A DNA stretch of 64,000 nt from assembly GCA_001600695.1 (NCBI GenBank), contig BCKQ01000002.1, positions 1,899,434 to 1,963,433 of the forward strand, written 5' to 3'. The position numbers and the translations under genes are program-made. The notes beneath the pieces are model-generated. The model did not search any database. It was not told the DNA's origin and was given only the letters and a program-made list of their open reading frames with translations. Shown one piece after another: positions 1,254-59,041 of the stretch (its first letter is position 1; each line of letters begins with the position of its first letter). The DNA comes from Ascoidea asiatica JCM 7603. Taxonomy: Eukaryota; Fungi; Ascomycota.

Positions 1254-2190
1254 TTAAACAAAAGTCCAAATATCTTTACCATTATCACGCATAAATTCAC
1301 CTAAATTTTGAACATTATCACACCATGAATTTAATTTATCTTTCATTGAATTAATTTGATCTAAATTCATAACTCTAGGCTGAACCCAACTTACAGTAAC
1401 AGTATTATTAACTTGATCAATAAAACCTTTTAATAGACCTATACTTAAAGCTCTCATTACTAAATGTTCAACATCATTTATTGGTAATCTTGTAATTTTA
1501 GAAATTTCAAAAAATGTTAAAATTCTTTGACCATTTGGTTTTTTAAAAATTAATTCAACTAAAGACATTAAACAAATTTTTTGTTTTAAGAAAAATTGAT
1601 TATTTTTTAATAATGGAGATTTTTGAAAAATTAATGGAGAAATTTTTTCAAATTTATTTAAATCACCAGAATTTAAAATAAATAAAAAATCTCTTAACCA
1701 AGAATATTGATCATTATTTAAATAATTTAAAATATCATGTAATAATAATTCACCAAAATTATAAATTTTATCACCTAATAAAGCAGAAATACTTAAATCA
1801 AAAGCTAAAATTTTTTTATCTTCAATTGATAAATTTGAAGATAAATTTTTATCAAGACAAGCTAAATAAAGTAAAGAATTTTTATAATAATCATTATAAT
1901 CATTTTTTAATTTAAAATATTGAGAATTAGTTGAATAAAAAGCAGCATTAATTAAAATATTAATATTATCTAAATTTTCAATTTGATTATTAATTAAATC
2001 TAAAATTAATCTTGAATCTTCAAATTGATTTAAATTTAATTTAATTTTTGCAATTTCTATTTGTAAATAAATATAAGCTTCAATTTTATCATCAATTTTA
2101 TTAAAACATTCATTTAAATTAAATGCAAAATTTTTATTTTTTTTATTTTTTATATCATTAATTTTTTTTAAATTTAATTCATTATCATTT

Positions 2191-2267
<77 letters not shown>

Positions 2268-2645
2268 TGAATATGTATAAGTATATGAATAATCATAATC
2301 TTCAGGTAAATCTTTTTCTAATTTTGTTTTAATTGATAAAAGATAATCTAATTGTTCTTGAAAATTTTGAATATCAGTAATTGATAATAATAAAAATTGA
2401 ATAAATTTTAATTCATAAATATTTTTATAAAATTTTAAAACAAATTGATTAAATAATTTAAGTCTTAAATTTTTTGAAATTGGAGAACGAAAAAATTTTT
2501 CTAAAGATTCAGTTAATTGATGCCATAATTTTCTATCATATAAATCTTCAAATTCATAAAAATTTGGATATAATTCTTCATTTGATTGTAATCTTAAAGT
2601 TGAAAGAATTGCAGGAATATCAGATTCAATTTCCATTTCAGACAT
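1254..2645 (-). CDS. RPN9: 26S proteasome lid subunit Rpn9 (PCI domain) with a poly-Asn insertion
   Basis: FEDLYDRKLWHQLT, ALLGDKIYNFGELL, VEHLVMRALSIGLLKGFIDQV..WVQPRV; start placed at MSEMEIE (ATG 2645); the ORF track extends to 2681. Confidence 0.93.
2193..2267 (-). repeat. (AAT)25 microsatellite encoding N25 inside Rpn9
   Basis: Pure tta/att run in frame. Confidence 0.95.
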
Positions 2646-2843
2646 CTTGGAATAAATTATGATTTGGTTGATAATATACACTACAGTTGTTTGACAATGG
2701 ATTATATCTATTGATAAGTATTATTGATAAGTATTATTGATAAGTATTATTAATTGATGACTATTGATAATAATGTTTCTCATGTTCTTATGCTTCTTAT
2801 GTTTCTTATGCTTCTTTTAATTCAATTGAATATTTCAATTGAT

Positions 2844-2852
2844 GGTGGCAAT
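2844..2852 (+). promoter_or_regulatory. PACE-like Rpn4 binding site upstream of RPN9
   Basis: GGTGGCAAT versus the PACE consensus GGTGGCAAA, about 200 bp upstream of a proteasome gene. Confidence 0.65.
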
Positions 2853-3653
2853 ACTTGGATATGGCGGATATATGAAAATCCGAATAGATCCAAGCCAGGA
2901 AGCAAAGGGCATTATACGAGCTGCTATCCGTAAAAGGAAATGCGGAATAAGGACGGTTTCAAAAATTTGATTTAATTTCCGCAGTTACCCTCCCGTTTCT
3001 AAGCCAGAATGCTTACGTCATCAGCTTTTCACCTACCGTAGAAAAGAAGAAGAAAATGAGATCTCGGAAGAGAATGCATTCCGTGAAACCAACCAGAAAG
3101 CACTTGACCAAACCCTGGGAAAAGAGCGCGCGACAGCAGCAAACGCAGTGACGAACAAACGAACCAGAGTAAAAAAGAATAAAAACACGCAAAACGCCAA
3201 CAATGCAGGGCTGAAGACCCCGGGGAAGGGGAACAAAACACCACTGCCGATTGCTATGGCTGGCACTTTTGGCCTTTGGTAGGAATCTGAATAAGAAATA
3301 AGAAAAGAAGAAAGAAATCAGAAATCAGATGCAAATACCTCCAAAAGAAGTTGGAACAACAATTACTTTTCAAAAAACAACTAATCATCAATCTCAGAGT
3401 CTTCAGATCACTCAAGAAGATAGAACAGTTATATTCATTCTGCTCTTTTCAGAGATTTAAAACTCTTAAAACTTCAATGGACAGCTACTGTGTTGTTTTT
3501 TTCAAAGTGAATCAAAGAACAGTTTCTATTGCTTTTATTTCTAAAGTAAACAGAATCTAATTGAAATACTTCAATGAAATCAAATTAAAATCAAACAATC
3601 AAACAATAAAACAATTAATTGTATCAATAATAAGTCAATTAATCAATTTCAAA

Positions 3654-4928
3654 ATGATGAATACACCTCAGATAAATATAACTCATTCTCAACCAGATTT
3701 AATTAAGTCGAATTCTTCAAATACAACTCCAAAGAAATCTGTTAATTTAAATAAATCACCATCTGGTAAAAAAGCCTTTCTTGGAATTTTTTCAAATAAT
3801 AATAATAAGAATAATAACATTACTATTGATACAGATAAGAAAAATACATCTCCTTTACATGATATTCAAATATCACCAACTAGATCTAGATCAAGATCAA
3901 TATCAATATCAAGATCAATATCCAAAAACAGAAACAGATCAAAATCAATATCTCAATCTTCAATAGGTGAAAACACAAGTAAAAATATAATAAGCAATTC
4001 AAATAATAATTCAAATAATAATTCAAATAATGAACATAATGATTCAATTTCTTTAAATTCAAATAATTCAAATAATTCAAGTAATTCCTTTACTTCTTCC
4101 GATTCCGAAAGTTTTAATCCAATCAATGAATCAAATATATCCACTCCTTCCCGTTTCAACAAATCTACAAAAAATAAAAATATTATCGATAAAAAACACA
4201 TAAATAATAACATAAATAATATAATAAATAATAATCCATTATCTCCTTCAATATCAAAATTTTCTAATAATAATAATAATAATAATAATAATCAAGATTA
4301 TCCTCAAAATCCTTTATCTTATCCATCTCATTCTCAATCTCAATCTCAAATTCAAATTCAAACTCCAAATCAACTTCTGCTGAATATACATCAGAAATTG
4401 AATTCAATGGAAAGTCATTTCTCAAATAGATTAGATTTTAATTCTGATATATATAATTCAAATTATAATTCAAATTCAAATTCAAATTTCGATTCAAATC
4501 AATTAGATTTAGATAGTTTAAATTTAAATTCAAATTTTAATAGTCAATATTTATCTGATAATAATATAGATTTATATCAATTATTAGTACAACCAAAATA
4601 TTTAAGATTATTTACAAAATCAAAATCAAAAAATTATTTAAATTATTCAAATCATTTATTCTTAGCTCAACAATTAAATATTCAAAATAATTTAAATTTA
4701 AATCATTTTTTATCAAATAATCAAAATTTTGATCAAACAAATTTAAATATTGTAAATAATACTATAACTCCTCATACTCAATTAACTTTAATTAATAAAT
4801 TTAAATCTTTTGATAATATTGAAAATAATTCAATTCTTGAAAATAAATCAAATAAATCAAATAAATCAATTTATTCAAGATCAAATTCAATTAATAATAA
4901 TATTAATAATCTTAATACAACAACTACA

Positions 4929-4963
<35 letters not shown>

Positions 4964-7196
4964 AAGTTTAAATAATGATATTGATAAAAATCATAAAATA
5001 AAACCAAAAAATGGTGCTATATGGTCTCTTCAATTTAATCATGATGGAAAATATTTAGCCGCTGCAGGTCAAGATGCTATAATAAGAATATGGAAAGTAA
5101 TATCTTCTCCATTAGATAGACTTGAATATCAACATAATAATAGTAATAATAATAATAATAATATTACTATCAATACTAATAGTATAATTAATAATATTAA
5201 TAATAATAATTTAAATAATAATAATTTAAATAATGTAAACAATATTAATAATATAAATAATTTTGATCCAACTTCTCCAAATTCATTATCTGAACAAAGT
5301 GAATATGATACTATACTGCAAAATTCAAATTCTTCAAAAAAACCTGTTTATGCACCTGTATTTCATGATACTCCATATAAAGAATTTTTTGGACATTCAT
5401 TAGATATTTTATCTTTAACTTGGAGTAAAAATAATTTTTTATTATCAGCTTCAAAAGATGGTACTGTTAGATTATGGCATATAGATAGAAATAATTGTCT
5501 TGGAGTTTTCAATCATCCAGAAGGTGTAACTTCAGTTTGTTTTCATCCAAATGATGATAGATTTTTTTTAAGTGGAGCTTTAGATAATGGTTTAAGATTA
5601 TGGTCAATTTTAGATAAAGAAGTTAGTTATGTTGAAATTTTACCAAGTTTAATAACTGCAATTTGTTTTTCACCTGATGGTTCAACAACTTATGCAGGAA
5701 CTTTTAATGGTATGTGTTTTTGTTTTGAAGCAAAAGGTTTAGAATTAAAATATCAATTTGAAGTACGTAATACATATGGTAAAAATTCTCGTGGTACAAA
5801 AATTTCTGGTATTCAATGTTATGATATTGAAAAAAATTCAATAATAAATTCTCCAATAAATTCTACAAATAATTTTTTAAATAATAAAATTATTAAAGAT
5901 ACAAGAATTATTATTACAACAAATGATTCAAGAATTAGAATATATTCATCACTTACAAAAACTTTAGTTACAAAATTTAGAGGTTTAGAAAATAAATCAT
6001 CACAAGCAGTTGCATCAATTTCAGATGATAAAGATTATCTTATATGTGGATCAGAAGATAATTATATATATATGTGGAAAATTAATGATGAAGAATTATT
6101 AGAAAAATATGATAAAAAAAATAGAAGAAATTTAATACATAATTCTAAATTAAAAAAAAAATATATTGATTTTATTGATGAAATTCCAAAAAAATTAAAA
6201 AATGGAAATTATATTGCATTTCATGCACATAAATCACCAGTTACATGTGCAATATTTGCACCAAATTCAACAAAGAAATATTTATCATTATCAAATGATC
6301 CAATTTATGAATTATTTTCAATTTGGGAAGATGTAATGAAAAATAATTTAGAATTAGAAAATATTGGATCACCAAAATCATTTAAATCTAAAACAGAATC
6401 AGAAAATTCAGAAAAATTAAAAAAAATTAAAAGTTCATTAAGTCAATTTATTGATATTGAACCAATTTTAGATCCAATAATTGTTAGTGCAGATAGAGAT
6501 GGTATAATTAGAATTTTTAGACAAGATTCTGGACAAGAATTAAGAAAAGTTTTATTAGAACATTTTATTAATAAACCAGGTAATGAAAAATTAGCAGAAA
6601 AAAAAAAAAAATTAATTGTTACAAAACTTACAAAAAAAGCTAAACCAAAAACATTAAGACATTTTGGAAATAGATCAAGATCACCATCAATGGATAAAAG
6701 AGTTATTGGAATGAAAACAATTGGAGAAAATAATATTAATAATATAGGAGGAATAGGAGGATCATCATTAAAACAAGTTTCATCTAGTAAATATGGAGAA
6801 GATAAGAAATCCAGTCCTGATAGAATATCCAATAATAATAATAATAATGATGATATTATAGGTTATAATAATATAAATAATAATAATAATAATGATGGTA
6901 ATAATAGTAATTATAATAATAATAGTAATAATATTATAAATGATAATAATTATAGTTATAATGATTTAAATAATACAGATTTTTTAACATTACCACCAAA
7001 ACTTAAAAGTTCTGGATCATTTTATTCATTACATAATGGATCTAAAGGTAGTTTATTTTCAAGAGGACGTAAAAAAAGTGAAGTTGGTAAAAGAATTTGT
7101 GATATATGTAGTGGTATAAAATTTGCATTTAAAGTTATTGATAATAGGGAAACATTAATTTGTACAGATTGTGGAAATCAAGTAAATACTGTTTGA
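3654..7196 (+). CDS. WD40-repeat protein of the DGR2/LAF1 (YMR102C; WDR44-like) family
   Basis: GAIWSLQFNHDGKYLAAAGQD, YAPVFHDTPYKEFFGHSLDILSLTWSKNNFLLSAS, FHPNDDRFFLSG, ITTNDSRIRIY, C-terminal CxxC...CxxC; first ATG at 3654 (the track starts at TTG 3561). Confidence 0.85.
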
Positions 7197-8727: not shown

Positions 8728-8778
8728 ATGGAGATTGATTTTAGAACAGTGAGTGTATTTGAATACGAATATTAATAT

Positions 8779-8809
<31 letters not shown>

Positions 8810-9277
8810 TAAATAATGAGATTGAAAAGTTATTAATTATACTAACTGTATGATTATTATTATTATAATTATTATTATGTCAAGTCCGTTTATGGAGAAA
8901 GTAGAGGTGGACATCATTATTGTATTGAATTTAAAAGAAATCCAATAAGAATAGTTGCATATTATTCACAATTTTTAAATGGACTTGAATTTCATTTTAG
9001 AGATTTTGCAAAACAAGAATTTGGTAATTTAACTGGTAAAACTTCAATATTTAATTTACAAGAAGATGAATTAATAACTTCAGTAAATTTAAATTTTGGT
9101 TTATTCATAGATTCAATTCAATTTTTTACAAATAAAAAAAGATGTTCAAAAAGATTTGGTGGTACTGGTGGTGGTAATACAACTGTTGAATTTAATGGTA
9201 AATTAGTTAAACTTTTTGGTAAATGTGGTGGTTTAGTTGATTGTATGTGTTTTGGAACTATTGATGAAAAATTGTGA
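8728..9277 (+). CDS. Single-domain jacalin-like (beta-prism I) lectin, 137 aa, two exons (8728-8748, 8885-9277); missed by the ORF track
   Basis: Exon 1 MEIDFRT; intron GTGAGT...TACTAAC(8840-8846)...AAG; exon 2 SVYGESRGG...EDELITSVNLNFGLFIDSIQFFTNKKRCSKRFGGTGG...LFGKCGGLVDCMCFGTIDEKL*. Confidence 0.85.
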
Positions 9278-50276: not shown

Positions 50277-51584
50277 TCAGTAAGGAGCATAATTGAATCC
50301 TAACTCATCAATTTCATCTCCATCTTGACCATAGAATCCAACAATTTGAAATCCTGATGGTGCTGTAAATGTGGTACAAGTACCGGATGTCTTACCTGCT
50401 GAGACAGTGTTGCCATCTGAAGTGGTTAATTTCAAATAGAATACTCTGGTGTGACTACTATATGTATCAACACAAGCATAAGCTCCAGTTAAATATTCAC
50501 CATCTGTTAATGTTAAAGAATATGCATCACCTCCAGTACCACCATGAGAAAATACAGTTCCATCTTCAAGAGTAAGAGATACAGCATCTAATCTATTGGC
50601 TCCTCTTAAGGTTACAGACGAAGTCATAGAACCTTCAGCAATATCATCAAGATCATTGAACCAGGTACCATGGAATCCACCAACAATATCACTTTGTTTG
50701 AAGGTAGAGGATAAGGTATAGGTGAAATTGACTAGAACTGGGTTATGATCAGATAAAGTACTACCTTCATATTCAAACAAAGTACTTTCATAATTGAAAG
50801 CATTGGCAGTAAGAGTGATGGCCTTACTACCTCTGTAAAGGACTTTGTCAACGGTTTCACAGGTATTGTTGGCAGCAGGATTGTCACATACCAAAGCATC
50901 TGCTCCTTGGGCTGGAGCTGAACCATCTCTGATCAATTCAACCCATGCATCAGTCATATCATTTTGGGTGCCGAATAAACGAATAACATCAGCAGTTCTG
51001 GTGTAACGAGAATTGGTGTCACCGAACACAATAACAGCATCTCCATCGGCATTTGCATCAATCCAATCAGCAACTTGTTCAATGTTATCTGCTCTGGCCT
51101 CGTTGTCGCCATCCTCACTTCCTGCATCCGTATGGAGATTGATGAAATCAATATAAACTCCATCTTCTAATCTGACCTTCATATATGTGAACCCCTTTGG
51201 AGTCAAACAATCATTTTCAGAAGCATCAGAACAGTCATCCCATTTGGTTCTACCGAAATTGATCCAAGGATAATTGGATAATGAATTCAACCCAGAACCA
51301 ATAGCTGCACCTCCAGAAGTAGCGGTTCTGTATGTATGGTCATCATATTCATATAAAGTTGAATGGTAGTTGAAATCCTCTTGAACATGAATAACATCTA
51401 ATTGATCCTTATATGTTGAAAATAAGGATCCGATTTGGGTGGTGGCAGTAGTTTTATCTAAACTTTCATCATTACTTTGAAGAACTTCAGGTAACCCAGC
51501 TACATTGAATGAAAGAACATTGAAAGCACCATCAGCAGCAATTAAACCTGCGGAATAAAATGCGTATAAAATTGAAGTAAGCAT
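50277..51584 (-). CDS. Secreted EEP (sphingomyelinase/DNase I-like) phosphohydrolase with a C-terminal jacalin-like lectin domain
   Basis: Hydrophobic signal peptide; FNVAGLP, QEDF, PKGF, NLHTDAG, FGDTN, DKVLYR, LSDHNPV; jacalin motifs GGFHG, RLDAV, HGGTGG, LTDGEYLT, IVGFYGQDGDEIDELGF. Confidence 0.85.
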   Translation of the reverse strand: MLTSILYAFYSAGLIAADGAFNVLSFNVAGLPEVLQSNDESLDKTTATTQIGSLFSTYKDQLDVIHVQEDFNYHSTLYEYDDHTYRTATSGGAAIGSGLNSLSNYPWINFGRTKWDDCSDASENDCLTPKGFTYMKVRLEDGVYIDFINLHTDAGSEDGDNEARADNIEQVADWIDANADGDAVIVFGDTNSRYTRTADVIRLFGTQNDMTDAWVELIRDGSAPAQGADALVCDNPAANNTCETVDKVLYRGSKAITLTANAFNYESTLFEYEGSTLSDHNPVLVNFTYTLSSTFKQSDIVGGFHGTWFNDLDDIAEGSMTSSVTLRGANRLDAVSLTLEDGTVFSHGGTGGDAYSLTLTDGEYLTGAYACVDTYSSHTRVFYLKLTTSDGNTVSAGKTSGTCTTFTAPSGFQIVGFYGQDGDEIDELGFNYAPY

Positions 51585-53213: not shown

Positions 53214-54602
53214 ATGTTTTTTTCAAGTTCTGTTTTACAAATTTTAGTATTGGCTTTAGGTGTTTCAGCCTTCCCTTCATTCAATTACAAACCATACCCT
53301 CAAGACTCAGATGAACAGTACAATAAATTAAGATATTTAGGTACAACTGGTCCATACATTTCAAATCGTGGATATGGAATTTCACCAGAGGTTCCACCAC
53401 AATGTACAGTCACGCAAGCTCATTCATTTATGAGACATGGTGAAAGATTTCCAACTACCGGTACTGCAAAGTCACAATCAGCTTTAATCAAAAGAATGCA
53501 AAACTCAAATGTTACCAATTTTAAAGGCCCATTAGCATTTATTGAAGATTATGAGTTCTATGTTAAAGATAATAATGATTTGGAAACCGAATCCACCAGT
53601 GGATTTTATGCAGGTTTGAAAGATGCTTATGATTTAGGTGTTACTTTACGAGAAAGATATAGTGATTTATGGGATGGAGAAACCCTTATGCCAGTTTTCA
53701 CTAGTGGTCAAGCTAGAGTTGTAAATACAGCTAGATATTTTGCTAAAGGTTTTTTCCAAGATAGTTATTCTAATTTATCATCAATTCAAGTTATTCCTGA
53801 AAAAGAAACCCAAGGTGCAAATACTTTAACAAGTCACGATGCTTGTGCCAATTATAATTCCTCTTTTAATGACGCAATTACTAATTCATTTTCTTCTGAT
53901 TACCTTGATGTAGCAGCTGATAGATTAAATGAATTAAGTCCAGGATTTGATTTAGATGGTGATGATGTTTATGTATTAATGGGACATTGTGGTTTTGAAT
54001 TGAATGTTGTTGGAAACTCTCCATTTTGTGAAATTTTCACTCAAGAAGAATTGATTAATTTTGCATACTCCAAGGATTTAGGTTTCTATTATGAAAATGG
54101 AGCTGGTTATAATTTATCTGTTCCATTGGGATCCGTATATGCCAATAATACTTATACCTTATTAAGTGATGATTCTTTAAATCTTACTTTTTCATTTTCT
54201 CATGATACAGATATTGTAACATTTGTAACTGCTTTAGGATTATTTAAACCTGAGAAAGATTTAAGTGCAGATAAAATTGATTTTGGATCAGTCTTTAGAA
54301 GTTCAGAAATTGCTCCAATGGGTGCTAGAATTATTCATGAACGTTTAGAATGTAATGAAAGTTATAATGAAACTGAATCGACAATTGAAACTTATGTAAG
54401 AGTTATTGTCAATGATGCAGTTATTCCAATTCCAGATTGTCAAGATGGACCTGGTTTTTCATGTTCATTAGAGGGTTACAAAGAAAATTTTGAAGATTTA
54501 TTAAATGGTTCTAATTATCTAGATGCATGTGGAGTTAATTCAACATATCCTCAATATTCTAAATTTTATTGGGATTGGACACCTACTTTTGAAAATAATT
54601 AA
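53214..54602 (+). CDS. Secreted histidine acid phosphatase/phytase (PHO5/PHO3 family)
   Basis: Signal peptide, RHGERFP catalytic motif, FSHDTD, PMGAR, YVRVIVNDAV, CQDGPGFSC. Confidence 0.93.
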   Translation: MFFSSSVLQILVLALGVSAFPSFNYKPYPQDSDEQYNKLRYLGTTGPYISNRGYGISPEVPPQCTVTQAHSFMRHGERFPTTGTAKSQSALIKRMQNSNVTNFKGPLAFIEDYEFYVKDNNDLETESTSGFYAGLKDAYDLGVTLRERYSDLWDGETLMPVFTSGQARVVNTARYFAKGFFQDSYSNLSSIQVIPEKETQGANTLTSHDACANYNSSFNDAITNSFSSDYLDVAADRLNELSPGFDLDGDDVYVLMGHCGFELNVVGNSPFCEIFTQEELINFAYSKDLGFYYENGAGYNLSVPLGSVYANNTYTLLSDDSLNLTFSFSHDTDIVTFVTALGLFKPEKDLSADKIDFGSVFRSSEIAPMGARIIHERLECNESYNETESTIETYVRVIVNDAVIPIPDCQDGPGFSCSLEGYKENFEDLLNGSNYLDACGVNSTYPQYSKFYWDWTPTFENN

Positions 54603-56579: not shown

Positions 56580-57285
56580 TATGTATAATGAATATTTTTT
56601 TTTTTAAAATTAGAATTTAAAAATATCTTTTATTTTTAACAATTTTTTAATTGAATTCTTTAAATGATCAATTGATATATTGTTTTACTGTTTGATTCAA
56701 GACTTCATCTTTTAAGAATAAGTGAATGAATGAATCAATGAATGAATGAAGTGTTGTTTGTTGTTTTTGTGTTGGATAAATTGAGGTTCTTTTGAAGACT
56801 GAGAGAAGAGTTCAGTTCTTGAGATGAATAAGATCATTGTGCATAGATAAAGAGTGTTTTGTTCTTGATTTCTTCTTGATTTCTTCTTCATTTCTTCTTG
56901 ATTTCTTCTTTTGTGATTGATGTGTGTGAGTGAAGATTGTTTCCATTGTGGTGTTTGAATGTGTATTTATTAAACATTGAACCATTCAATTTATTGTCCA
57001 TTGTTTATATCTTCTTTCTTTGTTTATTTCTTTGTTTATATCTTTGTTTATATCTTTGTTTATATCTTCTTTTTTTGTTCTTTGTTCTTTGAATGCGGTA
57101 ATTGAACATCCGTTGTCAGGAAGTTGATCGGGAGAACTAATCCGCCCACGTGAATATTTAAACTTAAAGACCAATTATACGGTACTTCTTATTTCATTTC
57201 AATTATTATATTAATATATTATTATAATATATTATTATAAAGTATATAAAGTAATATTATAGTAATATTATAGTAATATTATAAA

Positions 57286-57797
57286 TTAATCTTCATTTGA
57301 ACCAAAACTGATAGCATCAATGAAACCACCTTTTCTAGCAGTGATTTGAACTAATTTACCATTTAAATCAATTTCATGTTCAATACCACCATTATCATTA
57401 CCAAAATAAATTGATTCATTATTTTTATTTGTAAAAAATTTAATTGCATCAACATAATCACCAGATCTTAAAATAATTTTATTAATATATTCATTATCAT
57501 CAAGATCTAATTCAAATTCACCTTTTTCACCATTATTATTACCAATTAATTGATTATGATCATCATCTTCATAAATTAATTCAATTCCATTAATAAATTC
57601 TTCATAATAAACATTAATTTGTTTTAAATCATCATTAATTTCAATAGATTGTTCATCTCCACCTTCTCCACCATATTCAATCTAACATATAAAAAAAAAA
57701 AGAATGTTAATATAAATTAAGTTATATTACTAAAGATAACTTTAATAACTTATATATATAACTTATATATATAACTTACTGTTTGTAAATCAACCAT
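57286..57797 (-). CDS. Second single-domain jacalin-like lectin, 137 aa, acidic; two exons (57780-57797, 57286-57681); missed by the ORF track
   Basis: Exon 1 MVDLQT; intron GTAAGT..TATTAAC..TAG (57682-57779); exon 2 IEYGGEGGDEQ...NEYINKIILRSGDYVDAIKFFTNK...LNGKLVQITARKGGFIDAISFGSNED*. Confidence 0.88.
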
Positions 57798-59041
57798 TGT
57801 TTTAAGATTATAAATTTGTTATTTAATATAATTAGTAATTCAGTTTATACTTATTACTTTTATATAATTGTTAATTTATTCAATAACCTCAAAAGATGAA
57901 TAAATCTCTCTTTATTTATACCATTTCTTTACATTATCAATTATAATCATTTGATAAATGAATATATGAATAAGTTGAATTGAATTGAATTAAATATTAA
58001 TAATCTAAGACATTTAATATAATATATTAGAAAGTATTGGATTTTGAATAAATTGGAAAACCAAGATTTTGATATTTGATATAAAACACCAAAGCCACGA
58101 AATTTAACGAATTAACTTGTTTGTTACTTGTTTGTTACTTGTTTGTTAACTTGTTTAATAACTTGTTTAATAACTACTTCATTGACCACTTCATTGACCA
58201 CTTCATTAATCTTCTCGTCTTTTACACGTTTTGAAGTCGATGATTGAAAAAAGACTCCGGCGTTTCTTCACTTTCCTCACTTCTTCACTTTCTTCACTTC
58301 TTCAACGCCACCGCCACCGCCATTTCCGCAACACTCTCAACAGAACAAAGAACACAAACACAAACACAAAGAAGAAGAAGAAGAATTAAACAAGAAGTTC
58401 TTCAGTTCTTCATTCTTCATTCTTCAACCATTGCAGTTGAAATGACTCTGAGAAGGATCAACAGACAAGAATCAAGACAAGAAAGTAAAGTTCACACTGT
58501 TCAAGTCTGTTTAGACTCTACAATTAAAAACCATTGTTTAAGTACTGTGATACAGTAAGAGAATCGTCAAATATATAAAATAAAATAAAGTAATAAAGTA
58601 AAGTAATAAAGTAATAAAATGTATCCTGTCATCAGCATTTGAATTCATCGCCTTAATCTAATAAAACACTTCGAATACCAAACTTCCTATCGGGGATATT
58701 ATATAATATATTATAAAATATAATTTAATCTGGGAAATTAAAATATCAATCTTTTGAATGATATTATGGCAATGTAATTTAGTAAATACTCAAATTCCAT
58801 CGTGGCAAATATTTCCTGTACTTTTTGATTAATTAAAAGAAAAATAATTAATATAAAATAAAACAAGTGAGAAATTGCTGTTTTTATATTAAATTTAAAT
58901 TTAAATTTAAATTTGAATTTGAAATTATTCTCGGAAGGGTAACTTCATTCACACACTTTTTCAACCTTTTTAATGAAATAATTTGTTTATTTTTTAAGGG
59001 TTATTTATAACAATTTAATTTATTAATTTATTATAAATCAT

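Follow-up and report, generated by a model that had tools for sequence, protein, structure and literature searches.

An intron-split gene for a predicted standalone jacalin-type lectin in the budding yeast Ascoidea asiatica

Gene structure and splicing

In a 64,000-nucleotide stretch of Ascoidea asiatica JCM 7603 (contig BCKQ01000002.1; the whole stretch is called the window below), the minus strand between positions 57286 and 57797 very probably carries a real, spliced gene whose product adopts the jacalin fold. This product, a predicted protein of 137 residues encoded by a 6-codon and a 131-codon exon, is likely to be a single standalone jacalin-type (beta-prism I) domain, strongly acidic and with neither a signal peptide nor a membrane segment. 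For brevity, the intron-split gene and its product are called the lectin gene and the lectin. An earlier note on this DNA had described a 6-codon exon, a 98-nucleotide (nt) GT-AG intron and a 131-codon exon, and when we re-read the minus strand this anatomy was exact in coordinates and sizes. The gene consists of the following parts.

57780..57797, minus strand: exon 1, ATG GTT GAT TTA CAA ACA (MVDLQT), 6 codons, phase 0; read directly from the sequence
57682..57779, minus strand: intron of spliceosomal type, 98 nt, guanine plus cytosine (GC) content 12%; placed by splice signals, paralogs, ACT1 and a scan for splice grammar
57286..57681, minus strand: exon 2, 131 codons plus TAA, phase 0, containing the entire Jacalin domain; placed by hidden Markov model (HMM) and fold model

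The intron has the features of a yeast-type intron, namely a GTAAGT 5' site (57779-57774), a TACTAAC-type branch point with one mismatch (TATTAAC at 57712-57706), the first downstream AG as the 3' splice site and a reading frame that is kept. The branch-point-like motif lies 25 nt from the 3' end of the intron. A T-run follows it, and then the TAG that closes the intron; the junction is in phase 0. As exon 2 lacks any Met codon and this TAG stands in frame directly upstream of it, exon 2 can be translated solely via exon 1. An unspliced transcript or an alternative start was rejected for the same two reasons, and because read-through from exon 1 halts after 15 codons.

Support for this structure was found elsewhere in the genome. 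ACT1 of the same genome is interrupted close to its 5' end by two introns, with GTACGT/GTAAGT 5' sites and TACTAAC branch points, and its first and second exons are 10 nt and 14 nt (AAGAAGTTGCTGCT) long (L007 2600-3080, minus strand; G000:C1). Since ACT1 shows both, tiny first exons and splice signals of this kind are normal in this genome. The splice grammar was also written as a regular expression (ATG, at most 12 codons, GT[AG]AGT, TA[CT]TAA[CT], first AG) and run over both strands of the 64-kb window. The scan returned two candidates only, which are the two intron-split jacalin genes of the window, with 131 and 130 open codons past the splice site. In 50 block-shuffled windows the mean was 1.6 candidates, none of which was followed by at least 100 open codons after the splice site. 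The splice-grammar match combined with the match to the Pfam Jacalin profile (E-value 1e-16) is more than chance.

The lectin gene has a GC content of 23% and a GC content at third codon positions (GC3) of 2%, matching the neighbouring genes and ACT1. It contains no CTG codon; therefore the ambiguous decoding of CUG, which the host clade reads ambiguously or as Ser (PMC6041473, PMC11342251), has no effect on the protein. Met, Cys and Trp are all missing from exon 2, which encodes 31 Asp and Glu residues versus 9 Lys and Arg residues (isoelectric point, pI, ~4.05). The N-terminus of the lectin, MVDLQT followed by IEYGGEGGDEQ, is hydrophilic and acidic with no hydrophobic segment, in line with the earlier statement that a signal peptide is missing.

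Family and fold

All searches, fold models and trees were made with exon 2 alone (57289-57681, minus strand), while exon 1 was translated only. Exon 2 matched the Pfam family PF01419 (Jacalin) with 62 bits and an E-value of 1e-16 (gathering cut-off 22) over profile positions 4-134 of 136, so that the HMMER check bore out the proposed family membership over nearly the full profile. In a sequence search of the PDB, the top match was griffithsin (E 8.9e-7, 28% identity), followed by Parkia lectin, PPL3, SalT/Orysata, horcolin and banana lectin. The HMMER alignment places exon-2 residues 59-125 on griffithsin residues 52-116; over the stretch that the earlier note had quoted, with a correct griffithsin counterpart, 13 of the 23 residues are identical.

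An AlphaFold2 model of exon 2, built on an alignment of 18 rows (A1), is all-beta and very confident, with a mean predicted local distance difference test score (pLDDT) of 95.8 and a predicted template modelling score (pTM) of 0.88. The Foldseek search with this model had an engineered monomeric griffithsin as its top match (E 1.4e-9, template modelling (TM) scores 0.76/0.80). The three four-stranded sheets of the beta-prism I fold are present, and both Foldseek and VIA returned matches to this fold; the structure prediction thus agrees with the standalone beta-prism jacalin that had been proposed. The model is a closed monomer. A homodimer prediction with the exon-2 piece scored 0.00, which speaks neither for nor against a domain-swapped dimer. 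By its modelled fold, the protein appears to be a generic mannose-type jacalin-related lectin, and by its sequence it appears to lean towards griffithsin.

Paralogs and other jacalin copies

Searching the 20.3-Mb assembly to which the window belongs with the PF01419 profile brought up six places. The lectin gene is among them, and two others (L004 and L005) are further standalone jacalin frames that also have no start codon. Both are preceded by micro-exons made up of ATG and 4-6 codons and ending in a Thr codon.

8728-9277 of the window, plus strand: paralog L005; exon 1 8728-8748 (MEIDFRT), intron 8749-8884 (136 nt), exon 2 8885-9277 (130 codons plus stop)
1373-2181 of L004, contig 15 (G000:C15): paralog L004; exon 1 MDYQT, intron 98 nt

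In L005 the junctions read ATG GAG ATT GAT TTT AGA ACA, then GTGAGT, TACTAAC and AAG (the first AG), then TCC GTT TAT GGA. In L004 they read ATG GAT TAT CAA ACT, then GTAAGT, TACTAAT and the first AG, then AGA GAA TAT GGA. The homologous genes are therefore split at the same place and in the same phase as the lectin gene: in all three, a phase-0 intron comes immediately after a codon for Thr, with the (Y)G-G loop a few residues further on. The gene of the earlier note is not unique, being one of three intron-bearing paralogs in the genome. These are mutually 36-46% identical (36% between the lectin and L005) and, in a tree of 186 jacalin domains, form a clade with a support of 93 in the Shimodaira-Hasegawa-like approximate likelihood ratio test (SH-aLRT); the support for the sister group of the clade is 40. 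Because its position is common to clade members that are only 36-46% identical, the intron shared by the three sequences appears to be an old and maintained feature. L004 differs in having an extension of ~100 residues after the jacalin domain, which is very acidic, repetitive and rich in Asn, Glu and Tyr.

A further jacalin domain occurs in the window at 50277-51584 (minus strand), as the C-terminal part of a fusion of 435 residues with an Exo_endo_phos2 (EEP) domain. This domain is not close kin of the intron-split lectin. The fusion gene has a GC content of 38.6% and a GC3 of 25%, versus a GC3 of 2-7% in neighbouring genes and ACT1, and a cluster of the ESM Atlas that shares this domain architecture is bacterial to 92%, mainly Pseudomonadota. 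We regard the EEP-jacalin fusion as a candidate for horizontal transfer. On another contig, L003 1520-1840 (G000:C10:171384-171704, plus strand) holds a partial copy of its jacalin domain with near-identical peptide stretches, two in-frame TAA stops and an N, the EEP part being absent upstream. This copy is a pseudogene remnant of the EEP-jacalin gene.

Candidate sugar-binding loops

The motifs YGGEGG, RSGDYVD and KGGFID are all found in exon 2, and the GG loop and two G-x3-D loops to which the earlier note had drawn attention are intact in the alignment. Aligned to the family consensus (A1), the N-terminal GGEGG (exon-2 residues 4-8) and the C-terminal GGFID (118-122) are the canonical loops of the primary site. 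In artocarpin, mannose is bound by Gly15 and Asp138-Asp141, the site being formed by the N-terminal GG loop and the C-terminal G-x3-D (PMC6359319). The middle loop SGDYVD (residues 73-78) is intact as well, its griffithsin counterpart being SGDYID, and a GNDNGG loop (94-99) occupies the place of a griffithsin GGSGG. The first G-x3-D has been lost, with Gly replaced by Glu and Asp by Asn (EEFIN). This loop is degenerate in all three paralogs, which suggests that its loss is probably older than the duplication that gave rise to them.

The likeness to griffithsin consequently holds in part: two sites are kept, and a third griffithsin-type site has gone with the first Asp loop. Judging from these residues, two of the three griffithsin sites are plausible in the lectin. 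Mannose-type sugars would be bound at up to two sites per chain, a canonical site built from the N-terminal GGEGG and C-terminal GGFID loops and a second one built from the GNDNGG and SGDYVD loops. Sugar binding by the lectin seems reasonably probable from the loop motifs.

Comparison with known systems

Griffithsin, from the red alga Griffithsia (PDB 2gty, 3ll2), likewise consists of one small beta-prism I domain. Its RSGDY(V/I)D loop is nearly identical to that of the lectin, the C-terminal G-x-(F/Y)-x-D aligns and the N-terminal GGxGG is present in the lectin. However, griffithsin has three symmetric sites (three GGSGG and three G-x-Y-x-D loops) where the lectin has kept two. The domain-swapped homodimer of griffithsin is neither favoured nor excluded for the lectin, whose model, a closed monomer, comes closest to engineered monomeric griffithsin. 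In addition, the lectin differs in its length of 137 residues and its very acidic composition.

The plant mannose-specific jacalin-related lectins (banana lectin, Heltuba, artocarpin, Orysata/SalT) are 20-31% identical to the lectin, whose host is a fungus. The combination of an N-terminal GG and a C-terminal G-x3-D that makes up their primary site is intact in the lectin. Banana lectin uses the first Asp loop for its second site, while the lectin has lost the first loop and keeps the middle one, equivalent to the third site of griffithsin.

The YIL108W-type zinc metallopeptidases (PF12044 plus PF01419), an Ascomycota metallopeptidase-jacalin family, form the top-ranking structural cluster in the ESM Atlas, with a TM score of 0.89 by query. 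The same genome has such a gene, L006, with an HExxH motif and a C-terminal jacalin domain that is 33% identical to the lectin. In these proteins, however, the jacalin domain forms the C-terminal end of a chain of ~700 residues, while the lectin is standalone, with an intron of its own, and groups in a different clade. To the fungal cytoplasmic defence lectins such as CGL2 and MOA, the likeness lies in small size, the missing signal peptide and lineage-specific paralogs, and their mode of action is the one proposed for the lectin (PMC2798750, PMC10512399). The known examples, which belong to mushrooms or moulds, are built on other folds, among them galectin and ricin-B.

Proposed role

The lectin would stay in the cytoplasm and not be secreted by the classical route. 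In filamentous fungi, cytoplasmic lectins are kept as a store within the cell and, once eaten, attach to gut glycans of nematodes or insects (PMC2798750, PMC10512399, PMC6126850). By analogy, the most likely role of the lectin would be to recognize glycans on foreign matter; it could, for instance, be held ready for defence and act on the gut glycans of a fungivore that has eaten the yeast. A fast-diverging family of three genes fits an accessory or defence role better than a housekeeping one. Nevertheless, a defence function is possible but somewhat unlikely. The fuller proposal, in which the three genes encode lineage-specific, cytoplasmic, griffithsin-related lectins that bind high-mannose glycans and shield a hyphal budding yeast from grazing invertebrates or glycan-bearing antagonists, is speculative and, taken as a whole, unlikely.

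The gene could instead be real and serve the cell's own biology, either as a nucleocytoplasmic, stress-inducible mannose binder like Orysata/SalT of plants or as a protein that recognizes the high-mannose glycans of glycoproteins which have misfolded or been retro-translocated. We consider this to be unlikely as well. The paralogs have diverged to 36-46% identity and differ in the Asp loops that they keep, L004 having Asn in place of the Asp in its C-terminal G-x3-D; such divergence characterizes fast-evolving accessory genes more than housekeeping genes. Moreover, no ortholog was found in the annotated yeasts searched.

Relatives and origin

The earlier note had placed the DNA in a yeast, and the window's Rpn9, which is 61% identical to that of Ascoidea rubescens and 48% to that of Saccharomycopsis crataegensis, identifies the host as a budding yeast of the Ascoideales. 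Further genes of the window are typically fungal (RTA1-like, DUR3-like, KCS1-like). An exact look-up of eight window proteins in the protein collection found none of the eight.

A word-indexed protein search with exon 2 gave no match. A profile search returned 41 matches, none with a fungal name; the only names were bacterial (Sphingomonadales, Chloroflexota, Alteromonadaceae), but most matches have no taxon, so this sample of names is biased. An exhaustive phmmer search against 1.84 billion representatives gave 353 matches, none above 47% identity. The phmmer clusters that were looked up had metagenomic, protist or plant names, and the nearest small relatives are unnamed proteins from metagenomes that carry a three-fold griffithsin-like repeat. 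In the protein collections searched, neither a named fungal relative nor a fungal standalone jacalin was found.

The window at 1254-7196, with RPN9 and a divergently transcribed WD40 gene of 1190 residues, is syntenic with A. rubescens KV454487.1:304991-326238 (L013). Beyond these two genes, A. rubescens has 4.4 kb without a called gene and then Med13, while the window has tRNA-Ile, the jacalin paralog L005 and a kinase. The three-gene family looks lineage-restricted. It could have arisen from the metallopeptidase domain, from an old fungal gene or by an old transfer.

A recent horizontal transfer of the lectin gene was rejected, as its composition is native, unlike that of the neighbouring EEP-jacalin fusion. 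It has also to be considered whether the three-gene family came from bacteria by horizontal transfer and gained its intron afterwards, as the bacterial names in the profile search, the missing fungal standalone relative and the A. rubescens locus without a paralog might indicate. We find such an origin quite unlikely. The composition of the lectin gene is fully native, the intron position is common to all three paralogs, and the best ESM Atlas cluster belongs to Ascomycota, with a gene of that type in the genome. The bacterial names come from the biased sample described above, and the tree leaves the sister group weakly supported.

Points against the proposed reading and remaining alternatives

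Several observations weigh against an expressed, sugar-binding defence lectin. The case for splicing of the intron is a comparative one, the branch-point motif is one base off TACTAAC, and the codon usage of the gene (C-ending share 0.05) gives no sign of high expression. Conservation was seen among paralogs within one genome, at 36-46% identity; an ortholog was not found in the protein collections searched, where identity in the best matches does not exceed 47% and covers part of the length, and the RPN9/WD40 locus of A. rubescens has no jacalin gene at the place of L005. As for sugar binding, Asn-rich variants (GNNNG and GNDNGG) stand in place of the second and third GG loops, and the loop motifs suggest binding without proving it.

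Some jacalin-related proteins use the beta-prism domain for protein-protein interaction. A comparable non-sugar use would suit the degenerate second and third GG loops, the loss of one G-x3-D and the very acidic surface (pI ~4), and a common fold proves no function. We judge this alternative to be very unlikely, as the canonical primary site (GGxGG and the C-terminal G-x3-D) is intact and corresponds to the mannose-binding residues of artocarpin (PMC6359319). That the gene is a decaying or silent copy, with an intact frame but neither spliced nor expressed, is highly improbable: a non-consensus branch point, a 13-nt tandem duplication at the 5' end of the intron and the presence of another jacalin copy as a pseudogene fragment (L003) would agree with it, while a frame of 131 codons is long for 23% GC (in 500 shuffles of the 3-kb region the longest frame had 132 codons, with a mean of 59), the conserved jacalin positions are all intact, the fold model is very confident and the splice grammar is complete and in frame.

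Other features of the surrounding DNA

A candidate TATA box upstream of the lectin gene is weak, since such motifs are common in DNA of 18% GC.

57913..57920, minus strand: candidate TATA box TATAAATA, 116-123 nt 5' of the ATG

The duplication in the lectin intron is a perfect 13-nt tandem repeat (unit x2.6) beside the 5' splice site, at 57745-57778. Short tandem duplications (7-24 nt), perfect or nearly so, abound in the intergenic DNA at 56600-58600. Within intergenic DNA of 10-18% GC, a GC-richer island at 57090-57180 carries CACGTGGG (57145-57152), an E-box of the Pho4/Cbf1 type. It lies downstream of the lectin stop codon and ~570 nt upstream of the ATG (56579) of a leucine-rich-repeat (LRR) gene; a histidine acid phosphatase gene is located nearby at 53214-54602. 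Among ~4,400 codons in eleven reading frames (window coding regions, L004 and ACT1) there is no CTG, in keeping with extreme AT bias and with Ascoideales strongly avoiding a CUG that they decode ambiguously.

Significance

Jacalin-type lectins are well known from plants, algae, animals, bacteria and mushrooms. To our knowledge, the jacalin domain is otherwise known in budding yeasts only as the tail of YIL108W-type metallopeptidases, and a literature search for jacalin and Saccharomycotina returned no relevant paper. The lectin adds to a known and widespread family and implies nothing mechanistically new. For annotation, the lesson from this genome is that a reading frame lacking an ATG can be a genuine second exon, preceded by a first exon of 15-21 nt. 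If our reading is true, the lectin would be a natural two-site relative of griffithsin, which may interest engineers of antiviral lectins. With a family of standalone and probably cytoplasmic lectins in a hyphal yeast, the idea of cytoplasmic defence lectins would then reach from mushrooms and moulds to Saccharomycotina, and the members of this family would be the first such lectins described in that group.
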